A model generated the notes under the pieces. The model saw nothing but the letters and a program-made list of their open reading frames with translations, had not been told where the DNA came from and did not search any database. A stretch of 63,331 nucleotides of DNA, the filler included, from Guillardia theta CCMP2712 (taxonomy: Eukaryota > Protista > Cryptophyta): the NCBI RefSeq assembly GCF_000315625.1. It is 3 parts of 3 records of this genome, joined end to end, with 100 filler letters (N's around TTAATTAATTAA, not from the genome) between each part and the next. Parts side by side here need not be neighbours in the genome. Positions count along the whole stretch, not along the records: positions 38,897 to 63,331 come from NW_005434651.1; 2 more parts are not named here. One strand, given 5' to 3'. Position numbers and translations under genes: made by a program. This document shows, piece by piece, positions 36,432-63,105 of this stretch (position 1 is its first letter; every line of letters begins with the position of its first letter).

Positions 36432-39267
36432 AAAGAACTGAGAGCTTGAAGATACGAGGAATAGACAACCAGTGAAGGGGGGGAGAAGATAAAGGAAGGG
36501 GAGGGGTAAGGGAGGGGGTGGGGACTGAAACGCCGAAGGCTTTTCGAGATTCAGTCACGTGATGGAGAAAGATGGAGAATCGAGCAACAAGCAAGAGAAG
36601 GAGGAGGGGTAAGAAGGACGAGATATAAGGAAGATGGAGGTAGGAGCGGAAGGGAGGAGGAAGCGAGAGGAGGAGGAGGAGGAGGAGAGGAATGCGCTAC
36701 TGCGTTGGAGGACGAGGAGTGTGCGAGGGAATTCAGGATCGGGTCTTGCGTAAAGACCTACGTAATACCTTAGTAGGTGGGGTGGTGAAAAGATGGGGGT
36801 AGGGGTGAATCGGAGTTCACAGAATTTGGGACATGGGTAGGGTAGTTGGAAATATTCTGAGGGTGGGTCCACGGACCCTACCGGTAGAGATACTATTAAG
36901 GGATGACCATGGAGCTTGCCTTCACTGTTAGGATGGGTGGGTGGTACCTTTTTGGAAAGAGGAGAATACCATATATACTGCCCTTGGCCAAATTCATTAC
37001 ATCTTCACTTATAGAATTTTCACCCTTTGTGTATATGGGAGCACATAGTCTCATCAAGGGCTGATGAAGTACGAGGGTACAAGGGGTAGGGTTATGATAC
37101 CTCCAATGTGCGGTTGGGCACCCCCTCTGTGACGGAACGGGGGTGGGGTGAGGGTCATCACCATACTTATGACTGGAACTGAGGGGGTAGGGATCACTGG
37201 AGGAGTGGGGTGGTGATGGAATATGGGCTAGAGGTTGGTAGGTTTTGAGGGGGTAGGGGTATTTCAAATGTCTCACGAGGTGGGGTAGGGGTGGGTATCG
37301 TGATAATGTTTACCTGGGGAGAGGGTCAAGAGGCTACAAGGGACAGTCGCTTCCTTTGAGGGGGTACCAAATGAAAGGTATGAAGATTAGTGGGTAGGGG
37401 TTACCGTTATCACCCTAGAGATTCTCTTGAACTTTCTTTAAAAGTACCGGGTCATTTTAAACTATGAGGGGTACTTGATACCTTCATGTTTACAACGGGG
37501 GTAGGGGAGGTCCTTTCGGGCTCATCACTTGGTTTTACGATACGATAACTGAGGGAGTAAAAATCCGTTTTTGACTGGGTTGGGGTAGTAAACTACCCAC
37601 TGTTTGACTCAATATATGACTGCTTAGTACGGGTACTGGATATCATTGGCTGGGGTCCTCGCGGTGGGTCACGGAGCACTTGGTTTCAATTAGGTCCGTG
37701 ACTTTCAGTACTAGGCCAACCCGCCTCATGATTCTGGTCTCGGCTACCACCCCACCCCTCTTTTTCCCATAAAATATACCCCATAGATAGACTTTCTCGA
37801 GATATTCGAGGATTTCCAGTCAAACTCCCCGATGTTCCCCCAACCGGCGCGATAGTACTTCTGAATGTATGGGGGTGGTTTAGCTTAGAGTACCATGGGT
37901 AGGGTGGGTTACACTTTGACCTCCATCATACATGTCCAACTAGAACAACTTACAAGCAATCTAATGATTAATTTTGCAGTAGGTATCTACTGTACCCTCG
38001 TGCAAACATGATCAAACCATGATGAGGGGTACTTTTGACCTGGTCTTCAGGACAGGGGGGTGGAATGAATGGGAGGGTGGTGCGATGCTGCTGACTCGGA
38101 GAAGGAGAGCGGCCATGGTCATCAATTAATAAAATACTTTTATAAGCTAAAAGGGTTATTGAGGGCAGAGGAGTTAAGTGAGGTCAAGAGGTTAGGACCA
38201 AACCTGCAGACTCAAGTTCTGAAAAGTGCATTCATAATTTGAAATATACGAAAGATTATTTCAATTGATTTCAACGTGGTAAAGGAGTCGTTGGAAGCAC
38301 ATGATCACGAAAGATACCGGCAGAGGCAGGAACCATTTATGAAATAGAGTCTTTTCGAGTTTTACAACATTCCCCTGTGACTTCTTCATGGCCATGAGAT
38401 CGAAGCAAGGCTCAACTCCTCAACTCCGGCCCGGTAATGGTGAATGAATGGCTCGTACCGATCTTTTTAACTTAACTTTGACTAAAGATTTGTTTGCGTT
38501 TACTCAAAGTTAAGTTAAAAAATGACAGTCACTGCCTTCCAGGTCGTACTGATTTTTAACTTAACTTTGAGTAAATGCCAGGCTGATTGAGTAGAAGCCA
38601 CTGAACTTCCGCAGACGGTTTGAGTCACTGAGAAGCCTACCGGGCCTGAGTGGCTACTAGCCGCCATCATGAGAGTACGACCGGAGGCCGCCCGGCCCGG
38701 GCGCGGCCGGCCGTCTCCGGCCCGGGGCGACTCCCGAGTCCGGCCGCGGGGAAGCCTACGTAGTCTCGGCCCCTGATCCGATCGATTGTCCGATAGNNNN
38801 NNNNNNNNNNNNNNNNNNNNNNNNNNNNNNNNNNNNNNNNTTAATTAATTAANNNNNNNNNNNNNNNNNNNNNNNNNNNNNNNNNNNNNNNNNNNNCTGT
38901 TACTTGGTGTCTATTAAAACATACACAACGTCAGCGTCCCCGTCATAGTCATCACCATGAATCATCCTCCTCATCTTGCATCCGTAGAACATCCTTGGTC
39001 TCTCTTTCCTGACACTTCTCTCTCCTTGTTCTTCTTCAACATAAGTCTCTTCATTTCGTTCCCCCCCTCGCCCCCTCCCCCCCCCCCCCTGTCTTCATTC
39101 TTTCATACCACCGCCCCCACTCCCCCGAGCCTGCCTGGTTTTCCCTTTTCCCCGTACAAATAATCCCGCCCTCCCTTCCCGCTCCCCTGCCTCTCGCCGC
39201 GCGCCGTCAGCGAAGGAGGAGATGAAGTGAGCGAGGCAGCCGCTGCTGTCATCCCGACCAGTCGAGC

Positions 39268-42200
39268 ATGGCAGACCCCTGGGAGACCAGCGCGACTTCC
39301 CGCGCGTCGTCCAGCCAGCACGAGGGAGGCGGGAAGAAGAAGCACAAGAGATTCAAAACCAAGTTCTCTCACAGCAAAGCCAAGAAGCGCGTGGGAAAGC
39401 ACAAGCCTCCTCCACTACCTTCCCCGTCCCATGACGCCATGCAGGGTGAGGAGGAGGGCCCTCGGGCAGGGAGCTGCTCGGCAGACGCTCATGGCGGTAG
39501 AGGCTCGCTCGTGGATCGCAAGTGCTGGTGCACCTGCAGCAAGGACGGAAAGGTTTACACAGCAAGAATCCTACAGCAAGAGGGAGATCGGCTCAAAGTG
39601 CACTACATAGGATGGAACGACAAGTACGATGAGTGGGTCAAAATCAAGCGCGTGGTCCGCTTCTTGGACAAGAACGAGCATGCGGAAGGAGATAGAGGCG
39701 CTAAGAACAAGGTGGGAGGGCCCATGCGGTTCTCCGACCCTCTGCTCTTCTTCTGCTACGAGTGCTATGAGGGTGGAAAGCTGCTGAGCTGCGACTGCTG
39801 CCCGCGACGGTACCATCGTGAGTGTGTGGGGCAGGCGCTAGAGGCGGAAGAGGTCAAGGTCTCGAGGGATCAGGGTTGGGTCTGCCAGCTCTGCTCTGCC
39901 TCGAAGGGACGCCTCTGCTTCCCCGACCGCGTTAACAGGCTGCAACAAGCCTGCGACAAGTTCCACATGAAGCACGCGGTAGCCACCTTCGGCAGGCAGA
40001 CCGTGCGAGTCAGCGAGGTGAGCCAGGAGGGAAGCGATGAGGTGGAGGGGTCGAAGAGAGGTGTGGAGGGAGGATGAGATGATAGGCAGGAGGAGGGAGG
40101 AGGCAGGTCGCTGACTGCTTGCAACAGCTGTACTCTCAGTGCGTGAAGAGCGGATTGACGGGCAGCCAACTCGTTCAGTTTTCAAGCGCGCAGGAGGCGA
40201 TCGATTATCTGACCAAGATGGTAGATCAAGAATCAGCGCGTGGAGACTCTCCGACCAAACAGGCAGACATGCTCGTCTACGGGGCCTCGGCACTGAGTCA
40301 GCCGGGAGGAAGCGACCTCCTGCACTGCGACGTGTGCGGGTACAGCCGAGTGGAGGTAGGATGCAGTACCTGCCCAGCTGCCTTCCACCTGCGCTGCCTT
40401 AACTTGGAGCAGCACATGAACGGTGATGTGCCAGCTGACTGGCGCTGCCGCATCTGCCTGCATGAGGCGAGCTTGACTTCGGAAGCGATGCAGTCGTTCG
40501 AGGCCGTCCTCACCGCCGACGACCCTCTGCTTGTTCCCTCCATCGCCTCCTGCGACAGACCCGCCGTCGAGGCCGACGCTTCTCCCACACGTGCAGCCAA
40601 GAAAGCTCGCCGGGGGGTTGCAGAAGTCGTGCAGGTGGGGGAGGAGCTCAAGGATCAAGACCAGGAACCAGCACAAGTACTGGAGCGAGATCAGGAGGCG
40701 GAGGAGGAGCTGCCGAAGCATCAGCAGCTACCAGTACAACAGCAACAACAGGAGGAAGAGGGAGTGGAGGACGAGATTCAGCAGCTGGCAAAGCATCAGC
40801 GACAGGAGGAAGCTCAGCTTGAACACGTGCAAGAGCAGCAGGACGACGAACAGAATATGCGTGTGAAGCAACAGGATGAGCACGATAAAATTCAGGAGCA
40901 GCAGGGGCAACAGAAACGTCTGGAGGACTCAGTGGGGCCGGAGCAGAGGATGGAGGAAGGGACGGCGGAGCAGGGGATAGAGATGGAGGAAAACGAAATA
41001 TGTGGTTTGGGTGTTTCTCGAGCGAACATGCCTGAGGAGCCTGTTCTATGCTGCTCGTGTGGCTTCTTCGAGCAAGAGAGCGTCCGCTGCGACGTCTGCT
41101 TCCGGTGGTTCTGCTTCGGCTGCACCTGCCTCTCGCTCCAGACACTCCCCGCAGGCTCTTTCACCTGCCCCGAGTGCTTGGGCATCGACCAATATGACGC
41201 GCAGCTCGCAGTGAGCATGGAGGTAGTGCGGAATCGCATACAGGGAGGGAAGGTATGCCTGCAGGAGGTGGACATGTTCGCACAGACAGTCTACGACCTG
41301 CTGGCGACGTGCGCGTGGAAGGAGTTCACGATCAACCTCATGGTTCTGATGCAGCTGGTGGAGATGCAGATCAAGCACAATCACCTGCCGACGGTCCTGC
41401 CCTTTCACTCGGTGCACTATCCTCTGCCAAAGGAAATCGTGCGAGACATCGCCAGGTCTCACAGCAACCAGAAGCTGCAGGACGTGATGCGAGCAGAGAA
41501 GGTGAAAGAGGTCGAGCTCAAGCTGTTCAAGGTCAAGGAGGCTCCTTCGTCTCCTCAGTCTCCGCCTCCTAAGCTCAGGATCGGCTACGTTAGTGCTGAT
41601 TTTGTCAACCACCCAACCGCCGACCTCATGCAGAGCGCACTGCTGCTACACGACACAAGCAAGTTTGAGATCTTCCTCTATTCCATCACAAGGAACGACT
41701 CGTCCATGTACCGGCAGGTCCTGCAGCGCGAAATCCCAAACTTTCGCCTCCTCCCCAACGCCAAGAACGACAAGGCGTGCGCGCAGATGATTGCGGACGA
41801 CGAGATCGACATCCTCGTCAACCTCAACAGTCACACTGCCGGTGAGAGAAATGGCATCTTTGCCTTCCGCCCTGCGCCCCTCCAGGTGGTCTACCTCGCC
41901 TACCCGGGCACGCATGGTGCCTCCTACCTGGACTACAACGTGGTGGACATGGTTGTCAGCCCCAAGGAGCATCGTGAGATGTACACGGAGTCACTGATCT
42001 ACATGCCCCACTGCTACCAGACCAACTCTTTCCAAGACCTCTACCCTGAGATCCTCTCCTCCTCCTGCCTCCCTTCCCGCAAGGACCACGGCCTTCCCGA
42101 GCACGCGCTTGTCTTCTGTACTTTCAACCGCCTGGGGAGAATCACGGAGCATATCTTCCACGCCTGGATCAGAATCCTCAAGCGCGTGCCCAACAGCGTC

Positions 42201-42945
42201 CTCTGGCTCTACAAACACCCGACCATGGCCGTCCTCCGTCTCCTTCGCGCAGCTCGCGAGCAAGGCATCGACGCGACGCGCTTCGTGTTCGCAGGCCCGA
42301 TGATGCCCAAGATCGAGCACCTGAAGCGACTGACTCTCGCCGACGTCTATCTCGACACACACATCTACAACGGCCACACCACAGGAAGCGACTTCCTCTG
42401 GGCCGGCGTACCCATGGTCACGTTACAGGGCGACACCTTTCCTTCCCGCGTCGGCGCCTCCCTCGCTCGCGCCGTTGGCATGCAGGAGATGATCGCGACG
42501 GATCTGGCGGGGTGAGGATGGGAGGTCGCGAGATGCGCCAGCTGACGCTATGGCAGGTACGAGGAGAAGGCGGTGGAGCTAGGCAACAACAAGGAGGCGC
42601 TGGAGGAGATGAAGGCGAAGCTCAAGGCGGCTCGGCTGACTGCTCCTCTCTTCGACACGGCCCGATGGGTTGGAGGCGCTTCAAACGAGGCGCAGCGAGT
42701 GACGAGGATGCAGGTTGGAAGCTTCGAGGACGCACTGACGAGGATGTGGGAGAGACACGCGAGGGGTCTCGAGCCTGAGGACATCTTCCCCATCGACCCC
42801 GGAGCTAAGCACAGGGTGAGCTCCCTGCCAGTTGCGGGGGTCTGAGACTGACGTGAAGAAGGTCCTGAGCGACTCAGACTCGAGCAAGAAGTGGAAGGAG
42901 GAGAAAGGTGACGCGTTCCGACCCGACGCCTCCGCAAGTCGATGA
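39268..42945 (+). CDS. Chromo-barrel/Tudor-knot + 3 PHD fingers fused to a GT41 O-GlcNAc transferase (OGT/SEC-type) catalytic domain, without a TPR array
   Basis: Reader domains: VYTARILQQEGDRLKVHYIGWNDKYDEWV and PHD fingers at ~39751, ~40325 and ~41049. GT41 motifs: VLPFHSVHYPL, KLRIGYVSADFVNHPTADLMQS, FAFRPAPLQVVYLAYPGT, ILKRVPNSVLWL, ADVYLDTHIYNGHTTGSDFLWAGVPMVT and PLFDTARW. An intron at ~40003-40127 joins the two ORFs in frame; short 3' introns follow. Confidence 0.9.
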
Positions 42946-42991
42946 AACTCTCCCCTCCCTCCTCCTCACTTGGAATGCTAAGCGCTTCTTT

Positions 42992-44164
42992 TCACATTTC
43001 AAGGGAGTCGGCAACGCACTTGGAGACATGTTGCTTGTAGAGATTGAAGTTGTTGCGCAGCTCAACCTGGTTGGAACTTGAGAGGAGAGGAGGGGAGAAA
43101 GAGGACGAGGAAAGAGGAGGACGAGGAGGAGGAAAGAGGAAAAGGAGGAGGAAGAGTGAGAGGCTTCGTCAAGGTCAGACCGCAGCTTCTACGTTGGCAG
43201 GAGAGTCGTCGGTTGGGTCCGAGAGCATGGAGATGACACTTAGCACGATTGTCTCCACCTGCTCGCCAGCTCACGCCAGGTGTCAACCAGTCGCGCTCAC
43301 CGTGTGGACGGGGTTCCACCTCATGCTCGCGAGCTCCTGCGGGTTGGTCGCGTCTTCACCGGGGGCATGGAGGATGGAGATGCAGACATCTCCGTTGCTG
43401 TAAACTGAAGCCAGCGAGGTCATGCGTGCCGCAACATAGTCGCACACCGTTGGGATGCCAGATGGGAGTGAGAAACTTCATGCTGGGAGGCTTGTCGGGA
43501 TAACTTGAGACGAGAAAGAAAGTGAGAAACACAAAGATACATCCCTCATACCCATATACATCCCTCATACCCATATACATCCCTCATACACATATACATC
43601 CCTCATACACATATACATCCCTCATACACATATACATCCCTCATGCGCATATACACCACTCACTTCTCTGGAAACGACAACCTCGCACTGAATATTCCTC
43701 CTTCACTGCTGCAACGTCACCCCCGAGCGAGGAGCCGGTTATCTTACTAGAGGGAGTCCGGCGGCCCACTGATGCAGATGTTCCACTCTAACATGTTGGA
43801 GTCGTCGACGAGACCTGCTAGAGTCAGCACAAGAGGAGCGAGAGGCAGGATGAGGAGGGGAGAGGAGGGGGAGGAGAACAAGGAGTTGATGAACGTCAGT
43901 GAAGACGAGGACGAGGAGGGTCAGGAGGGTCATGCCTGCCGAGAAAAGCTCTGACGGGTTTTCCTGCAACTCTAGAGCAGCAGACTGAGTAGAGCTCTCC
44001 CTCCCTCTTCCCTCACCTCTCAACTGCATCCTCAAGATCTGCGAGCTTCTCAACCTCGTAGGAGAGTTTGCTGCTGGCGCCATGGCAAGCAAACCAGGTA
44101 GAAGAGCCAAGGAAAGGAAGCAGGCGAGCAAGAGCTGACAATGATCGACTGACCATAATGACAT
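42992..44164 (-). CDS. Ubiquitin-conjugating enzyme E2, Ubc7/UBE2G class (acidic loop), with a possible N-terminal signal peptide
   Basis: Spliced: ILRMQLR|[12 protein letters not shown]|[22 protein letters not shown]|..|[18 protein letters not shown]|[35 protein letters not shown]|[26 protein letters not shown]|[24 protein letters not shown]. Confidence 0.9.
43539..43657. repeat. ~19-bp tandem repeat (CATCCCTCATAC(A/C)CATATA), about 5-6 copies, inside an E2 intron
   Basis: Direct reading. Confidence 0.8.
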
Positions 44165-47613: not shown

Positions 47614-48986
47614 ATGACGACGCTGAGGCACGTGAAGCCTCGAACGGGGTTGGACGAGGTGGTTGGAGGAGCTTTCAAGCGCAGAGTCTCTAGTTGGAAG
47701 AATCAGATTAAGGTCAACTGATGCCGTTCTACATCCTGAGGTGAAAGTTCGTGTTTCAGCCGGGCGACCCCAAGTATCCTCCAGAGAGAGATCGATACCA
47801 TCTCTACATCTCATACGCATGTCCCTGGGCGCAAAGGTGAGATAAACGGGGGAAGAGATCGAGTCTGACATGGTGAAGGTGCTATGCCACCATCCTCTTC
47901 AAAGGCCTCGAAGATGTAATCAGCATCTCCATTGTTCATCCAACTTGGCAGTATACTCGCCCGGGACAGGTTAGACCGCAGGCGCACGGCGTGACTGACT
48001 TGATTGTGACAGGATGAGCATATTGGGTGGGTCTTCGGCGACCCGTCAGATCCTCCACTCACGAACCTCAACGGCTATGGCTCTTACTCTGCCGAGTTTT
48101 CGATTCCTGACTTCGTGAATGGAGCAAAATGTGTAAGAGACTTGTACGAGCTAGCAGGGGATACAGATGGGAAGTACAGCGTGCCGATTTTGTGGGACAA
48201 GAAGAATAGAACGATAGTGAACAACGAGTCAGCTGACATCGTTCAGTTCTTCAACAGCGCTTTCGACGAGTTTGCCAAGTATCCGGATGTTGACCTGTAC
48301 CCTGAGGAGCTACGGGCTCAGATAGAAGAGCTCAACTCTTGGATCTACCCGTGCATCAACGATGGGGTTTATCGCTGCGGATTCTCTCAGACACAGGATG
48401 CATACGAGAAGGCTTTCGATGAGTTGTTCAACGCATTGGATAGGTCAGCCTCATGCTCCGGTCCACCCAAGACACTGAGTCTTGTCTTTACGCTTAGGGC
48501 GGAGGAACTGCTGAGCAAACAGAGGTTTTTGACAGGACCAAGGTTCACCATGGCGGATCTTCGCCTGTTCATGACATTAATTCGCTTCGATCCTGTAAGT
48601 GTTGTCCCACGTGATTGGGCCGAGAATCTGAGCTCTATCTAGGTGTATGTAGTGTATTTCAAGACGAACAAACAGCGGATCGACGAGTATCCGAACCTCT
48701 TCAACTACATGAAGGAGATCTACCAGGTGATCTGATCATTTGCCGCCACTGCCCGACATGCTGAGCCCGAGCAGATGCCTGCGGTCAAACCAACTGTAAA
48801 TTTGCAGCACATAAAGGTAAGGTTGTCTCCATGGCCCTTACCATGACGAGGATGCAGATTCACTACCTGAGCTCGCACCCCAAGCTGAATTATTATGGGA
48901 TCATCCCCAAAGGTAGAGATGTAGATCTGGATGCCCCCCACGATCGGCATCGCTTTCCGTACGAAGATTACAAGAAGAAGAGGTGA
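47614..48986 (+). CDS. Glutathionyl-hydroquinone reductase (GST Xi/omega-like, YqjG/ECM4 family)
   Basis: RYHLYISYACPWAQR (catalytic CPWA), KYSVPILWDKKNRTIVNNESADI, INDGVYRCGF, ADLRLFMTLIRFDP and HIKIHYLSSHPKLNYYGIIP. An N-terminal extension upstream of 47614 is possible. Confidence 0.92.
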
Positions 48987-55636: not shown

Positions 55637-56517
55637 ACTTACCGATGAGTGATATGAAGAGCCTGCCTCGCTATTTTATTGTATTGACTGTCAATAAACG
55701 TACAAATTGAAACAAGAGTTTTAAAATCTAGAATACTCAGCTTTACAACACAATTCTGACTGTCAGCAACAAAGTTATAAATACTTTTTATCTATATTGC
55801 TTATAAATATAATAAATGTTTTATTCGTGCAATGTTTCGGTACTTACCGATTAATGCTGACGGTACTTTATTAGATCAACGGCTACGAGATCACGGTGCC
55901 GTAAAGCGATAGATAGAGTAGAGACGAGGAGGCGAAGGGTGTGGAGGCAGGGGCAGTCGAAGACGAGGACATGGAAAGAAGAGAAGAGCGAGAAAGCTTT
56001 CGATGATCATGATGAGCGCTGAGGGATTTACTTTGCAAAGCTGAAGAGCATGGTTGAGATGGAATTTCAAAGTATATGGGGAGTCGCAGGATATCTTATG
56101 ATCACCATGAAGACACCTTGATTGCTTTTCTACAGGAGGGTAGAGAGAAGACTGGAGATGGACAAGTCGATCCAAGCCCTTTCATACGATCACTGCTCCC
56201 TCATCCATGGTGATGGATCTTTTCGATAAAACTGCCTGATTGTTGCTGGTGATCTTCAGGTGCAGACATTCCCTGCTTTAAGTTGATTGGAAAAATCTCG
56301 TGAGCTCTATCTTCGCATTTCCTTGCATCTGAAATCCTCGCAGTGAATGCCAATCTTTATTTTTCAAGTCCGATGAGGTTTGTGTTCGGGCTGCTTGAGG
56401 TTGCTTGTTCGTTTGTTTTAAGCGGGTTGACAGGTCGAGGTCGCTGCCTCTCCTCACGAAGCTGCTCTGGTCTACGTGTCTACTCCGAGCCTTCAACTTC
56501 ACAATCCTCACTCAGAG

Positions 56518-57916
56518 ATGGGTGAGCCACCTGCTTCGAAATTCATTCATGCGGTTAACTTCCCTCACAGACCGCAAGGTCGTATCTCTTTCCCGACTCA
56601 ACAAGGCCTGTGATCGTTGCAGAAAGTCCAAACTCAAGTGTGACTGGAACAAACCTTGCTCGCGTTGCGTGCAAGATCGAGTTCCCAACTCTTGCAAGTC
56701 TTCCGCGCGCAAGAGCAGAAGCTTGTCCGACGGAGTCTGTGCCAGCATCGCGTGTGAGCCCTGTAGATCTGCAAAAGTTCGATGCGATGCCACTCGACCC
56801 TGCATGCGATGCTGCAGGCTGGGGAGACAAGCAGAGTGTGTGGATCATCTCAAGGCAGTGACTGAGAGACCGCTCCCCTTCCTGCATGGCAAACTGATCT
56901 TCCAGGATGAGATGGAGGAATTGTTTCAGGTTGACTTCGGGCGGTTGGGTTGGGCATATGGTCCCATCAGACGCTGCTGGGAGTGGGGGCACGACCCTGT
57001 TGCGATGTTGAAGATTTTCCAAGATCTTCCCCCCTACTTCCAGAACATCCTTAGGGTAGGCATGACTGCGATAGGGATCCTTGACAGCCACAAGCGAAGC
57101 AAGTCGAACAGTCAAGCTGACGGTCTGCTCCTTGGCAAGCACAACATACAAGACGATGTTGCCGACTCCATCCCAGATTGCCAAGATCAACTTTGGGAGC
57201 TCAATCATGAGGTGTCCTTCATGAAGCTCAGATGGCGCAACAAGCAGAAGGAGAGGGCGAGCGTTCAGATCAACAACTCCGTTTGCCGTGTGTTCGGCAT
57301 CCATAAGGAAGAACTGATTGCTCGTCTCGCTCGACATGAAGTTCCGCTCTTGACCAGCGAGTTTGAGTGGCTGTGTCGAATCCTGGACCTCATGTTCTTT
57401 TCCAACTCCTCGCACGCCGGAAAGCCCATGATCCGATACGAACGCTTCCTCTTGAAGTTTGGCAAGGAAGTCAAGGGAGCCCTTGGCTGTATCACCAATA
57501 CTTGGGAACACGACTGGACGGGAGCGGTGGAGGCAGCGTGCTTCTATGTGCGACCGGTGAGTCTTGTTGCTCTTGACCGGAGGCTGTTGCTCATGCTCGC
57601 ACAGATTTCTGTCGAGGAGTTCGACTCTCATCGATGCAATAGTTCACTCTCGCGGCCAGTGACAGGCTTCTGTCGAGGAGACCTCTCGGGGCGAGAGCTG
57701 CTTGAAACTGCTTGCGATGATGTGGAGGTGAGGATTAGGGGGGAGGAGGCAGAGACTAACGCGGCTCAGAGGTACAAGATCTCCGCTATGAAACTCACGC
57801 TCGAGGGAAGGGAGGCTCTGTGGCGCCTCGCAGACCTGACGCAGAAGAAGCTAGCTCCCATTGTAAGTCAGGCTGAGCAACTCAAGCGATTGTCCGGCTC
57901 GCATGACCTCCTGTAA
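56518..57916 (+). CDS. Transcription factor with two Zn(II)2Cys6 binuclear clusters
   Basis: ACDRCRKSKLKCDWNKPCSRCVQDRVPNSC and ACEPCRSAKVRCDATRPCMRCCRLGRQAEC. The likely start is ATG G|GTGAG at 56518. Two in-frame intron-like segments lie near 57557 and 57728. Confidence 0.9.
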
Positions 57917-60356: not shown

Positions 60357-62917
60357 ATGAAGAGTCTTTCATCATTGTTTCAATCCAAGAAGGACAAGAA
60401 TGACTCGTCTAATCCTCAGGTACCATAAGGTAGACCCTCCCTCAGCTCTCTCTCACAACCTATTTTTTCAGATCTCAGTGAAAGAGTCAAACGCCAGCAC
60501 CAGCTCCTCCGATCCCTCCTTGTCCTCCCTCCATCCCTCCCTCCCTCCCTCCCTTTCTTCGCCGATCCCATCCGTCAAGCAAGAGCCTCAGGTCTGAAGT
60601 AGGTTTGAGCGCTTTAGGCTAACAGCAAGTAGAAATGGATCGTGGGAAAGCAGTATCCTGTGATCCCAGGAGAGCTCTTCTTCATGTCAATTCGCGATCA
60701 AGAAAAACTCTTGGAATTGCAGGAATGGCAGGTGGGGCTTTGAAATCTCCTCCCCTCCACTTCCTCGCTCCCCTCGCTATCCTCTCCTCTCCTCGCCTCG
60801 CCTCGCCTCGCCTCGCCTCGTCTCTCCACTCCTCTCCTTCCCCTACCTACCTACCTGCCTTCTTCGTTCCTTACGTTTGATCTGCAGAGAGCCAATGGGG
60901 TGAATGTGGATAGAGTCTTCTTCTCCACGGAGGGAGAGCTTCAGTACGTTGATACTCAACTCTTTCCCGCTCATCTCTTCCCTCCTCTCAATGAAGCCCC
61001 TCCTGCTCATGCATCTGCGCGTTCTTTTCTTGTGCTCTTAGCGGTGAGAGGAGGGTGACGGACGTTTAGATACTTCCCCTTCTGTGCTGACTTTGGGCCG
61101 ATGAATCTGGGTATGACGTACAGGTCAGTGGGGTATGAGGGGGACAAGGGGCTGATGCAGCTCAGGTTCATCCTCTTGTTGGAGCAGAAGCTGCAGCAGT
61201 GCAAGAAGATGGTGAGAAGGGGGGACGGGGATGAGGGGGCATAGTGACCCTGCTGGTAGCGAGAGAGGAGGATGAAACTGATGCCTGACATGGCAGGGCA
61301 AGAAAGTGGTTTATTACACCTCAGCAGACCCCGCCGAGAGGACAAACGCGGTATGAGGAGGGAGGAGGCAGTGGCGATGGAGCCTGTTGATCCTCGGACA
61401 GGCCACTCTGATCCTCGCCTACCTGGTCATGAAGAGGTTTTGCCTTCCTGCTCTCCCTCTCACCTCACCGTTGCCTCCACCAGAGACTGGTCGCCGGAAG
61501 ACGCCATGGCATCCCTTACCTTCACTGGCCGGCAGCCGTTTCTGGTGAGCTTGGAAGAGAAAGAGAGGAGGAAGGAGGTGTGAGAGGGAGAGCAGGGTTT
61601 CAGAGACGCTTCTTTCCAACAGCCTACATTTGAACTTTCAATCCTACACGTACTCAAGGGCCTGAGAAAAGCCAAGCTGTGCGGGCTCATCAACTTTGAC
61701 ACCTTTGATCTTGACTTCTACGAATACTGCGATCATCCTTCAATGGTCTCACCCTCTCTTGTTGCGCTCCTCAAGCTTGTCTCAGCTGAATCATGGCAGG
61801 CGGACCTGCATTCCATTGTTCCCAACAAGTTTGTTGCGATGAAAGGGCCGCACGAGAGAAGTTACATGAAGGACGGAGTTCAATTCCTCGCTCCCAGGTT
61901 CTTGACAAGCTCTCACACCACTCTTTCTCCTTGATCTTACCAAATCATCTTCATCGGCATCCTCAAAAACTATATATCCTCTTCCTCCTCCTCCTCATCA
62001 TCATCGTCCTCGTCCTCGTCCTCGTCATCGTCCTCGTCATCGTCATCGTCGTTCTCACACAGTGCTCAGTCACTACTTTGACATCTTCAAACGACTTGGA
62101 GTCTCGGCGGTTATTCGACTCAACGACGAACAGTAATTCATCAATACCTCCCCTCCTCTCCCTCTTCTTCTCTTCTGATCCCTTCAAAGGTATCCGGCAA
62201 GCGCTTTCACCGACATGGGCATCAACCACTACGACCTCTACTTCGACGACTGCACTGTCCCGCCTCGAGAGGTTCTTGCATGCCTCATCTCCCCCTCCCT
62301 TCCTTCCCGCATCGCTCTCAAGCTCGTCCGCTCGTGACCACCCGCAGATCGTCGATCGTTTCTTCGAGGTCTGTCGCAAGGAGAAAGGAGCCATCGCCAT
62401 CCACTGCAAGGCTGGCCTCGGAAGAACGGGGACGGTGAGGGAGACGAGGGAGGAGGAAGAGCGTCTGAGACAAGCAGCAGCTAATTTGTCTGTGGATCAT
62501 GAGGAAGTGGAAATTTACTGGAAGAGAAGCCATTGGTTTCTTTCCTTCCCCTCCTCCTCTAGCTCTGATCCTTGCCTCACTTGCTTTTCCTGCCTCCCGC
62601 TCTCACTCCTCCACCCCGCTCTCGTCCCTCCCTTCCCATCCTCACATCATCCCTCCCCTCCACTTTCTCTCCTCTCCTCTTCTCACTCTCAGCAGGCTAT
62701 ATTCGTGTTGTTCGTCCTGGTTCCATCCTCGGGCCCCAGCAGGAGTTCCTCGTGGTCGCTTTGCTTGTGTTGCTCCTCCCCACCTGAACCCCAGCAGGAG
62801 ATGGAGAACGAGATGTGGCAGCTTGGGGACCCGGACGTCGCTACTCTTCCAGCAAGACCCCAGCAGAGACAAAAACCCACGGCAAGCACAGCAGAGGTGA
62901 GAAGAAGAAACAAAGAG

Positions 62918-62961
<44 letters not shown>

Positions 62962-63105
62962 AGGAGGGAGGGAGAGAGGGAGGGAGAGAGGAGCTGACGG
63001 GGAGAGCAGGAGGAGAAGGAGCGAGAGGCAGCAAGAGCACGGGCCAAGGAGAACACTGAAGCCATGAACCGAAGAGCCGCTCAGATGGCTGCTCGCCTGA
63101 GATGA
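60357..63105 (+). CDS. CDC14: Cdc14 dual-specificity protein phosphatase, multi-exon
   Basis: YFPFCADFGPMNLG, GFRDAS, FDLDFYEY, DLHSIVPNKFVAMKGP, VIRLN, HYDLYFDDCTVPP, AIAIHCKAGLGRTGT and IRVVRPGSILGPQQ. Confidence 0.92.

Follow-up and report, generated by a model that had tools for sequence, protein, structure and literature searches.

Gene structure and transcript support

The DNA window analyzed here is a stretch of 63,331 nucleotides, filler included, from the cryptophyte Guillardia theta CCMP2712 (RefSeq assembly GCF_000315625.1), and the subject of this work is a gene on its plus strand with a coding sequence from 39268 to 42945, in the part of the window taken from NW_005434651.1. The coding sequence comprises 3432 nt in five exons and encodes a protein of 1143 amino acids (aa). 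From the N-terminus, this protein consists of a basic patch resembling a nuclear localization signal (NLS), a chromo-barrel, a first PHD finger (PHD1), a conserved motif, a second PHD finger (PHD2), a Glu/Gln linker, a PHD-like all-Cys finger (PHD3) and a GT41 glycosyltransferase domain. It is the product of an expressed nuclear gene and is a single-polypeptide fusion of reader-type domains with GT41. An earlier note on this DNA, made from the sequence alone, had proposed such a fusion with a start at 39268 and a stop codon at 42943-42945; both ends are those of the transcript-supported coding sequence, and spliced contigs link the reader exon to the GT41 exons.

Transcript evidence was drawn from contigs of three independent studies and one raw RNA run, compared with positions 39000-43100. 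The contigs derive from RNA since they are spliced. A single contig of 3988 nt (run X2) holds the whole coding sequence, with blocks at 39184-40015, 40126-42510, 42556-42667, 42713-42814 and 42861-43067 before adjustment of the cut offsets, and the five exons are joined by spliced contigs from all three studies. The joint between exons 1 and 2 was found in runs X1, X2 and X4, which represent the three studies; the transcripts thus join exon 1 to exon 2, the opposite of a separation of the reader exons from GT41. The four introns measure 110, 45, 45 and 46 nt and are all of the GT..AG type.

The 5' untranslated region (UTR) extends over 39184-39267, with transcript contigs starting at 39184, 39203 and 39217. 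A stop codon at 39223 lies within this transcribed leader in frame with the main ATG, and the ATG at 39268 is therefore the start and the N-terminus is complete. The leader also contains a minimal upstream open reading frame (ORF) of two codons (ATG AAG TGA, 39219-39227), 41 nt upstream of the main ATG. Exon 1 (39268-40017, aa 1-250), defined by the ORF, Pfam matches and the splice joint, carries the basic patch, the chromo-barrel, PHD1 and the beginning of the conserved motif. It is followed by intron 1 (40018-40127, GTGAGC..CAG, phase 0). Earlier this intron had been placed at about 40003-40127; the RNA bears out the intron and its 40127 end, while a donor near 40003 was rejected since the transcripts use GTGAGC at 40018. 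Exon 2 (40128-42511, aa 251-1045), supported by the ORF, Pfam and transcripts, holds PHD2, the linker, the PHD3-like finger and most of GT41. The remaining boundaries were taken from the transcripts: intron 2 (42512-42556, phase 2), exon 3 with C-terminal helices of GT41 (42557-42668, also matched by Pfam), intron 3 (42669-42713), exon 4 with the end of GT41 (42714-42815), intron 4 (42816-42861), and exon 5 with a 27-aa tail and a TGA stop (42862-42945). Intron 3, which is in frame and free of stops, was retained in the X1 assembly, where it would add 15 residues in the region of the GT41 C-terminal helices.

The public annotation presents a much shorter protein. The ORF at 40119-42515 (798 aa) is 100% identical to GUITHDRAFT_68991 (EKX48034.1 / XP_005835014.1 / UniRef L1JIQ4), a 493-aa "hypothetical protein" from an 824-kb scaffold that keeps only the GT41 part of the fusion; the last 8 residues of this model diverge, intron 4 having been read through. 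Because of this truncation, domain-architecture databases cannot show the reader-GT41 fusion of G. theta. The public model is also what would favor regarding the fusion as an artefact, with the reader exon forming a gene of its own upstream and the GT41 protein beginning at an internal start, as in XP_005835014.1. This explanation has next to no probability in our estimate: spliced contigs from three studies join exons 1 and 2, one contig contains the entire coding sequence, PHD2, PHD3 and GT41 share one uninterrupted 798-aa ORF as the earlier note had stated, relatives carry everything in a single ORF, and the conserved motif spans the exon 1/2 splice junction. A gene-model artefact is excluded by this evidence.

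Downstream of the stop codon, 114 nt of GA-rich sequence in the 3' UTR (43068-43181) are missing from contigs of X1, X2 and X4 and from eight raw RNA reads of X20, in which 43067 is followed directly by 43182. The ends of the gap are TG..CC, or AC..AG if shifted by a 3-nt ACC microhomology, and are not canonical GT..AG. Non-canonical splicing, an indel between strains and a template-switching artefact are all candidate explanations.

Domain composition of the fusion protein

Domains were assigned with Pfam gathering cut-offs of 20.8 bits for Tudor-knot (PF11717), 24 for PHD (PF00628) and 25 for Glyco_transf_41. The Lys/Arg-rich NLS-like patch occupies aa 20-46 (39325-39405) in the translation, and four of its residues (K24, K25, K27 and F33) are invariant in three orthologues. 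The N-terminus has no hydrophobic stretch resembling a signal peptide, and the conserved basic patch may direct nuclear import.

The chromo-barrel, or Tudor-knot, spans aa 84-133 (39517-39666) and was matched by PF11717 at 25.4 bits over aa 84-129. Aromatic residues are found at Y97, Y113, W116, Y120 and W123, and the top single-domain match in the Protein Data Bank (PDB), the chromo-barrel of ARID4A/RBBP1 (E 1.4e-7), is aromatic at all five positions. The Tudor-knot with aromatic-cage residues proposed earlier is thus recovered both by the family match and by this alignment. The next PDB matches were EAF3, MRG2, MRG15, MOF and Esa1; MBT repeats of L3MBTL3 gave a similar score over the core strand. 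An AlphaFold2 (AF2) model of exon 1 contains a five-strand barrel resembling the Royal-family barrels of PHF19, MTF2, RBBP1 and Esa1 (Z 6-7); in this low-confidence model the barrel core alone is usable, and the matches are to generic Royal or SH3-like barrels.

PHD1 (aa 163-209, 39754-39894) is a canonical C4HC3 finger with a Pfam score of 27.6 bits and eight zinc ligands that are invariant in the orthologues; its nearest solved relatives are CHD4 PHD2, PHF12, ZMYND11, PHF21A, TRIM66 and AIRE. It is followed by a motif defined by invariant alignment columns, R.Q.CD.F.MKH..A.FGRQ.VR..E, which matches no known family. The motif starts at 39937, runs to the end of exon 1 at 40017 and continues into exon 2; where G. 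theta has the exon 1/2 junction, the relatives have it unbroken (VRVYEL...). PHD2 (aa 317-360, 40326-40457), likewise canonical C4HC3, scored 24.7 bits against the cut-off of 24, is conserved across the clade described below, and has the PHD fingers of Rco1, AIRE and CHD4 as nearest solved relatives. Judged from sequence, neither PHD1 nor PHD2 has the Trp before the zinc-binding His that is used by readers of H3K4me3. PHD fingers of CHD4, AIRE and PHF21A bind unmodified H3K4, and PHD1 and PHD2 may belong to this class. Histone binding by the barrel and the PHD fingers, and any specificity for particular marks, would follow from these resemblances; the barrel, by its sequence class, would be expected to bind methyl-lysine.

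Between PHD2 and the third finger lies a low-complexity linker (aa 421-545, 40638-41012) with 29 Glu and 29 Gln among its 125 residues, which cannot be aligned between relatives. Both this linker and the Lys-rich N-terminus had been described in the earlier note. The third finger (aa 556-600, 41043-41177) has the pattern C-x2-C-x9-C-x2-C-x4-C-x2-C-x14-C-x2-C, with Cys at the usual position of His (C4-C-C3), and its eight cysteines are conserved throughout the clade. Its closest solved relative by sequence is the PHD finger of ING1 (E 3e-4), and it keeps the Trp of the ING type (RWFC versus EWFH). With Cys in place of His, clade members scored 13-22.7 bits on the Pfam PHD model, under the cut-off of 24. 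Of the three PHD fingers claimed previously, two therefore stand as such, and the third is better described as PHD-like.

A helical connector (41178-41309) leads from this finger into the catalytic domain. In the AF2 model it forms helices at model residues 62-81, 87-102 and 106-125, the last of which is TPR-like, and the alignment to human OGT starts here (DLLATCAWKEF versus NLAHCLQIVCDWTDY). The Pfam scan gave no match to a TPR family at E <= 0.1 in any exon, in agreement with the claim that only the last partial TPR helix remains. By sequence position, PHD3 and the three helices stand where TPR 11-13.5 stand in human OGT; some VIA alignments include the model's first residues, paired with human residues 385-430, a range that gives the first and last aligned residue only.

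The GT41 domain (41310-42511, continuing in exons 3 and 4) scored 363 bits against the Pfam cut-off of 25, and Pfam, PDB and AF2 results agree on an N-terminal catalytic lobe (N-cat) and a C-terminal lobe (C-cat), with a short loop between them where the intervening domain would be. Sequence matches in the PDB were strongest to metazoan OGT (5A01, 3PE3; E 8e-90 to ~1e-89), followed by the OGT homologue of Xanthomonas campestris, XcOGT (3.5e-52), and by SPY (4.7e-43). The AF2 model of aa 542-1044, from PHD3 to the end of exon 2, was built on a 24-sequence alignment and reached a predicted local distance difference test score (pLDDT) of 85.7, about 90 in the finger, and a predicted template modeling score (pTM) of 0.84. 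The model indicates that PHD3 and GT41 would form a rigid finger-enzyme unit. A Foldseek search with it returned OGT structures first (E 1e-33). VIA-align gave Z 33 and a root-mean-square deviation (rmsd) of 2.7 A over 418 residues for XcOGT, Z 30 and about 2.6 A over 430 residues at 35-37% identity for human OGT, and Z 27 at 23% identity for SPY. Sequence and model comparisons support assigning the catalytic domain to the OGT/SEC type and not to the SPY type.

The modeled GT-B fold has both lobes and the GT41-specific N-cat helices, and in this respect the complete GT41 reported earlier was confirmed. Two features had not been part of that description: the metazoan intervening domain is absent, with 38-41 residues between the YMPH and FN..R motifs versus 110-147 in animals, and QLYK is replaced by RLGR. 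G. theta and the rest of the clade retain the counterparts of human D554, H558, T560, K898, H901, R904, H920, T921, T922 and D925, in a numbering checked only for agreement with the motif spacing. K898, H901, R904, H920 and D925 are residues which we take to be uridine and ribose contacts in human OGT structures.

The RLGR motif (R918-L919-G920-R921, 42129-42140) aligns with Q839-L840-Y841-K842 of human OGT. The surrounding sequence is F-N-Q-L-Y-K-(I/M)-D in canonical OGT and SEC proteins and F-(N/C)-R-L-G-R-I-T throughout the clade, G. theta included. In addition, HPTAD stands for HPTSH, with H562 replaced by Asp. Among the 146 best of 35,404 library matches, which contain about 300 GT41 domains, the Lys is essentially universal and RLGR is confined to proteins that also bear the PHD3 module. 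In the same context, the highest-scoring GT41 representatives (P0187-P0209 and others) were proteins of 2000-3800 aa with three to six tandem GT41 domains, all with the canonical Lys. The Lys (K842 in human OGT, K665 in SPY) forms hydrogen bonds to the nucleotide phosphates, and enzymes mutated at this position are inactive (PMC9715652). K842M and K872M are the standard dead mutants (PMC2556091, PMC4703063). No K842R mutant was found in the literature, where published loss-of-activity mutants are changes to Met or Ala. RLGR(I/V) is invariant across clade sequences that are only 44-70% identical, which argues for constraint rather than decay.

Relatives and phylogenetic position

The full design is not limited to G. 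theta. The environmental protein P0002 (1360 aa) lies in one ORF of a 5.8-kb contig and recurs in identical form on contigs as long as 14 kb. It aligns with aa 97-371 of the G. theta protein (barrel, PHD1, conserved motif and PHD2) at E 1e-47, and the region from PHD3 to GT41 is 68% identical. A second protein, P0010, is an uninterrupted ORF of 1136 aa from genomic metagenome contigs, to which the same regions were aligned (E 6e-42). Its 90% cluster includes a transcript-derived protein of 1632 aa from Teleaulax amphioxeia with an HA domain, PHD fingers and GT41. Teleaulax, represented by this genomic ORF and the transcript-derived protein, and P0002 both carry barrel, PHD1, conserved motif, PHD2, PHD3 and GT41. 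The HA domain (PF03457, E 1.6e-13), at aa 49-107 of the Teleaulax protein P0179, is an additional N-terminal domain that is not present in G. theta. In a three-way alignment, all zinc ligands and most of the cage aromatics are invariant at about 32% overall identity, a pattern suggestive of purifying selection on the reader domains.

PHD2 and PHD3 are present across a wider clade in which the spacing from PHD3 to the catalytic domain is fixed. Two further subclades contain transcript-derived proteins of Geminigera cryophila, which points to several paralogues in cryptophytes. All named members of the clade with PHD2, PHD3 and GT41 are cryptophytes, and the PHD3 module occurs in only about six to eight of 1.8 billion representatives clustered at 50% identity. 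One 459-aa partial protein in the P0002 90% cluster (P0121, NCBI MGB1598059.1, at least 90% identity) is labeled as coming from a metagenome-assembled genome (MAG) of a Promethearchaeia archaeon; most likely, a contig of eukaryotic origin was wrongly binned with an Asgard archaeal MAG. When the reader cassette (P0002 residues 400-745) served as query, over a limited range of lengths and words, only P0002 and Teleaulax were found and no other enzyme family, and a feature search of the ESM Atlas returned only generic bacterial GT41 clusters, all scoring below 0.9.

A quick maximum-likelihood tree, with a single bacterial outgroup and without SPY, recovers the clade as monophyletic (SH-aLRT 100) on a stem of 1.92. 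Its sister group is canonical OGT/SEC (joint node SH-aLRT 90), made up of animal, plant, oomycete and other protist sequences. The G. theta enzyme thus falls outside the OGT-SEC clade of animals, plants and oomycetes. This bears on the proposal that histone readers have replaced the TPRs: the proposal holds for position, where reader-type modules stand in the place of the repeats, and fails as a recent swap within canonical OGT, since the tree shows an old, divergent paralogue clade. When canonical TPR-bearing OGT was looked for in cryptophytes, no second Guillardia protein appeared among the best 120 matches; the protist OGTs looked up for the same question were those of Diphylleia and Gefionella.

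Elsewhere in the window, a Zn(2)-Cys(6) binuclear cluster domain of fungal type (E 4e-12) is encoded in a 503-aa ORF on the plus strand (56405-57916). Such domains are generally considered fungal, and finding one in a cryptophyte is unexpected. An ORF at 61793-63067 (+) shows a weak match to dual-specificity phosphatases that stays under the Pfam cut-offs, and one at 48115-48642 (+) contains a glutathione S-transferase (GST) C-terminal domain (E 6e-9). The latter two are probably exons of neighboring genes.

Proposed function and its alternatives

We consider it fairly probable that the gene encodes a chromatin-tethered, TPR-less glycosyltransferase of the OGT/SEC type in which chromatin-reader-type modules occupy the place of the TPRs. 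The basic patch would bring the protein into the nucleus, where a chromo-barrel like that of ARID4A or MRG15, with an intact aromatic cage, would serve as a reader module. Barrel and PHD fingers would together dock the protein on nucleosomes whose histone tails show a certain combination of states. Beyond them, a flexible acidic linker would lead to the ING-like all-Cys finger, whose distance to the N-terminal catalytic lobe is constant, and the tethered catalytic domain could glycosylate Ser or Thr residues within reach, in histone tails or in chromatin-bound factors. Catalytic activity, sugar donor and substrates are predictions in this proposal. In a more specific form, the protein would be a self-contained, mark-directed histone glycosyltransferase: the readers would sense tail states, the rigid PHD3-GT41 unit would thread the tail, and the RLGR pocket would support transfer of O-GlcNAc or another sugar. 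We regard this stronger form as rather unlikely; if true, cryptophytes would possess a dedicated writer of a "histone sugar code", expanded into several paralogues.

Several observations weigh against a chromatin-tethered transferase. The position of K842 is Arg throughout the clade, Q839 is replaced by Arg and Y841 by Gly; with the essential Lys changed clade-wide, neither activity nor donor can be assumed to be OGT-like. On the reader side, only one subclade (G. theta, P0002 and Teleaulax) was seen to have barrel and PHD1, although other environmental gene calls may be N-terminally truncated. The AF2 model of the exon with barrel and PHD1 is poor (pLDDT 47 on a 3-sequence alignment), its structural matches are middling (Z <= 7.1), and the cage position Y120 is not kept in the two relatives. 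PHD3 does not have the second aromatic residue of the ING cage and may be purely structural.

The catalytic substitutions could be explained if GT41 had become a domain without transferase activity, serving as a nucleotide-sugar sensor or a protein-binding platform within a chromatin-reader protein. Arg has replaced the very Lys whose mutation kills the activity of human OGT, DmOGT and SPY and which is otherwise essentially universal in the 300 or so domains of the 146 best representatives; the stem of the clade is also very long (1.92 substitutions per site), and the title of a bioRxiv preprint reports non-catalytic roles of OGT. The change from Lys to Arg nevertheless retains the positive charge, which the published dead mutants with Met or Ala do not, and RLGR(I/V) together with the nucleotide-contacting residues of N-cat and C-cat is kept at 44-70% identity, as expected of a constrained and not a decaying site. 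A loss of activity is quite improbable in our judgment. Somewhat less improbable, yet still unlikely, is an active glycosyltransferase with a remodeled pocket (N/C-R-L-G-R, HPTAD) that uses a donor other than UDP-GlcNAc, or whose fingers recruit non-histone partners. GT41 offers a precedent for a donor switch in SPY, which uses GDP-fucose, and the changes of Y841 to Gly, H562 to Asp and Q839 to Arg alter the surroundings of the sugar-diphosphate site. Against such a switch, the presumed uridine and ribose contacts K898, H901, R904, H920 and D925 are conserved, and the domain is far closer to OGT than to SPY. Non-histone partners would fit the atypical C4-C-C3 finger under the Pfam threshold, but barrel and PHD1/2 find their best matches among established histone readers. 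A tethered OGT/SEC-type transferase thus remains the reading that we favor.

Comparison with known systems places the protein among the GT41 enzymes. It shares with metazoan OGT (human and Drosophila Sxc; 3PE3, 5A01) and plant SEC the GT41 GT-B domain and the last TPR-like helix running into N-cat. It differs from them in having neither a TPR array nor an intervening domain, in RLGR for QLYK, in its added chromo-barrel and three PHD-type fingers, and in its position in a separate, long-branched sister clade. XcOGT (2VSN, 2JLB) is the best structural match and likewise has no intervening domain, whereas it is bacterial, has no reader domains and is a weaker sequence match than metazoan OGT. XcOGT carries a short TPR stretch packed on the catalytic domain. 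SPY (7Y4I, 8DTF) shares the fold and has the same -IT after the Lys position, but it is more distant and retains the Lys (K665). SPY has 11 TPRs and uses GDP-fucose as donor (PMC9715652).

The reader modules have their best or near-best solved relatives in ARID4A and in complexes of the Rpd3S/SIN3B type, where the barrel of Eaf3 or MRG15 and the PHD fingers of Rco1 or PHF12 show the same pairing of a barrel with PHD fingers that do not have the Trp of H3K4me3 readers. There the modules reside on separate subunits and steer a deacetylase, whereas in G. theta they form one chain with a glycosyltransferase. The likeness holds at the domain level only (E 1e-7 to 1e-3), and this reader set may offer a hint to the marks that are read, as a lead rather than a result.

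It is a matter of long dispute whether OGT-type enzymes act directly on chromatin and histones in animals, which recruit them indirectly through TPRs and partners. Animal OGT reaches chromatin through TPR-partner contacts with TET2/3 and HCF-1 and in mSin3A, NSL and Polycomb group (PcG) contexts. The logical outcome would be the same in G. theta, but with the readers covalently fused and the TPRs gone. One-chain reader-writers such as the MYST enzymes MOF and Esa1, which have a chromo-barrel of the same family, and PHD-SET proteins follow the same design principle; here the writer module is a glycosyltransferase. Literature searches (GT41/PF13844, and OGT with PHD, Tudor or cryptophyte) covered full texts, with most subscription journals lying outside them, and found neither the reader-GT41 architecture nor a described precedent for a glycosyltransferase as the writer module of a one-chain reader-writer, in line with the earlier statement that no characterized protein of this architecture was known. 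Of the 229 papers matching the GT41 family, the titles and abstracts of 25 were covered, and none dealt with a fusion to reader domains; a match for SPINDLY in Guillardia concerned kinetochores only.

Recognized histone-reader modules have here been fused to an OGT catalytic domain with the TPRs dropped, and selection has maintained this arrangement across several genera and paralogues of cryptophytes. The value of the finding depends on biochemical confirmation. As one polypeptide whose reader and writer parts can be separated, the protein may provide a compact test system for the question of which targets a GT41 enzyme tethered to chromatin modifies. The clade-wide change of Lys to Arg at the usual site of "catalytic-dead" mutations would further serve as a natural experiment on the mechanism of the GT41 family.

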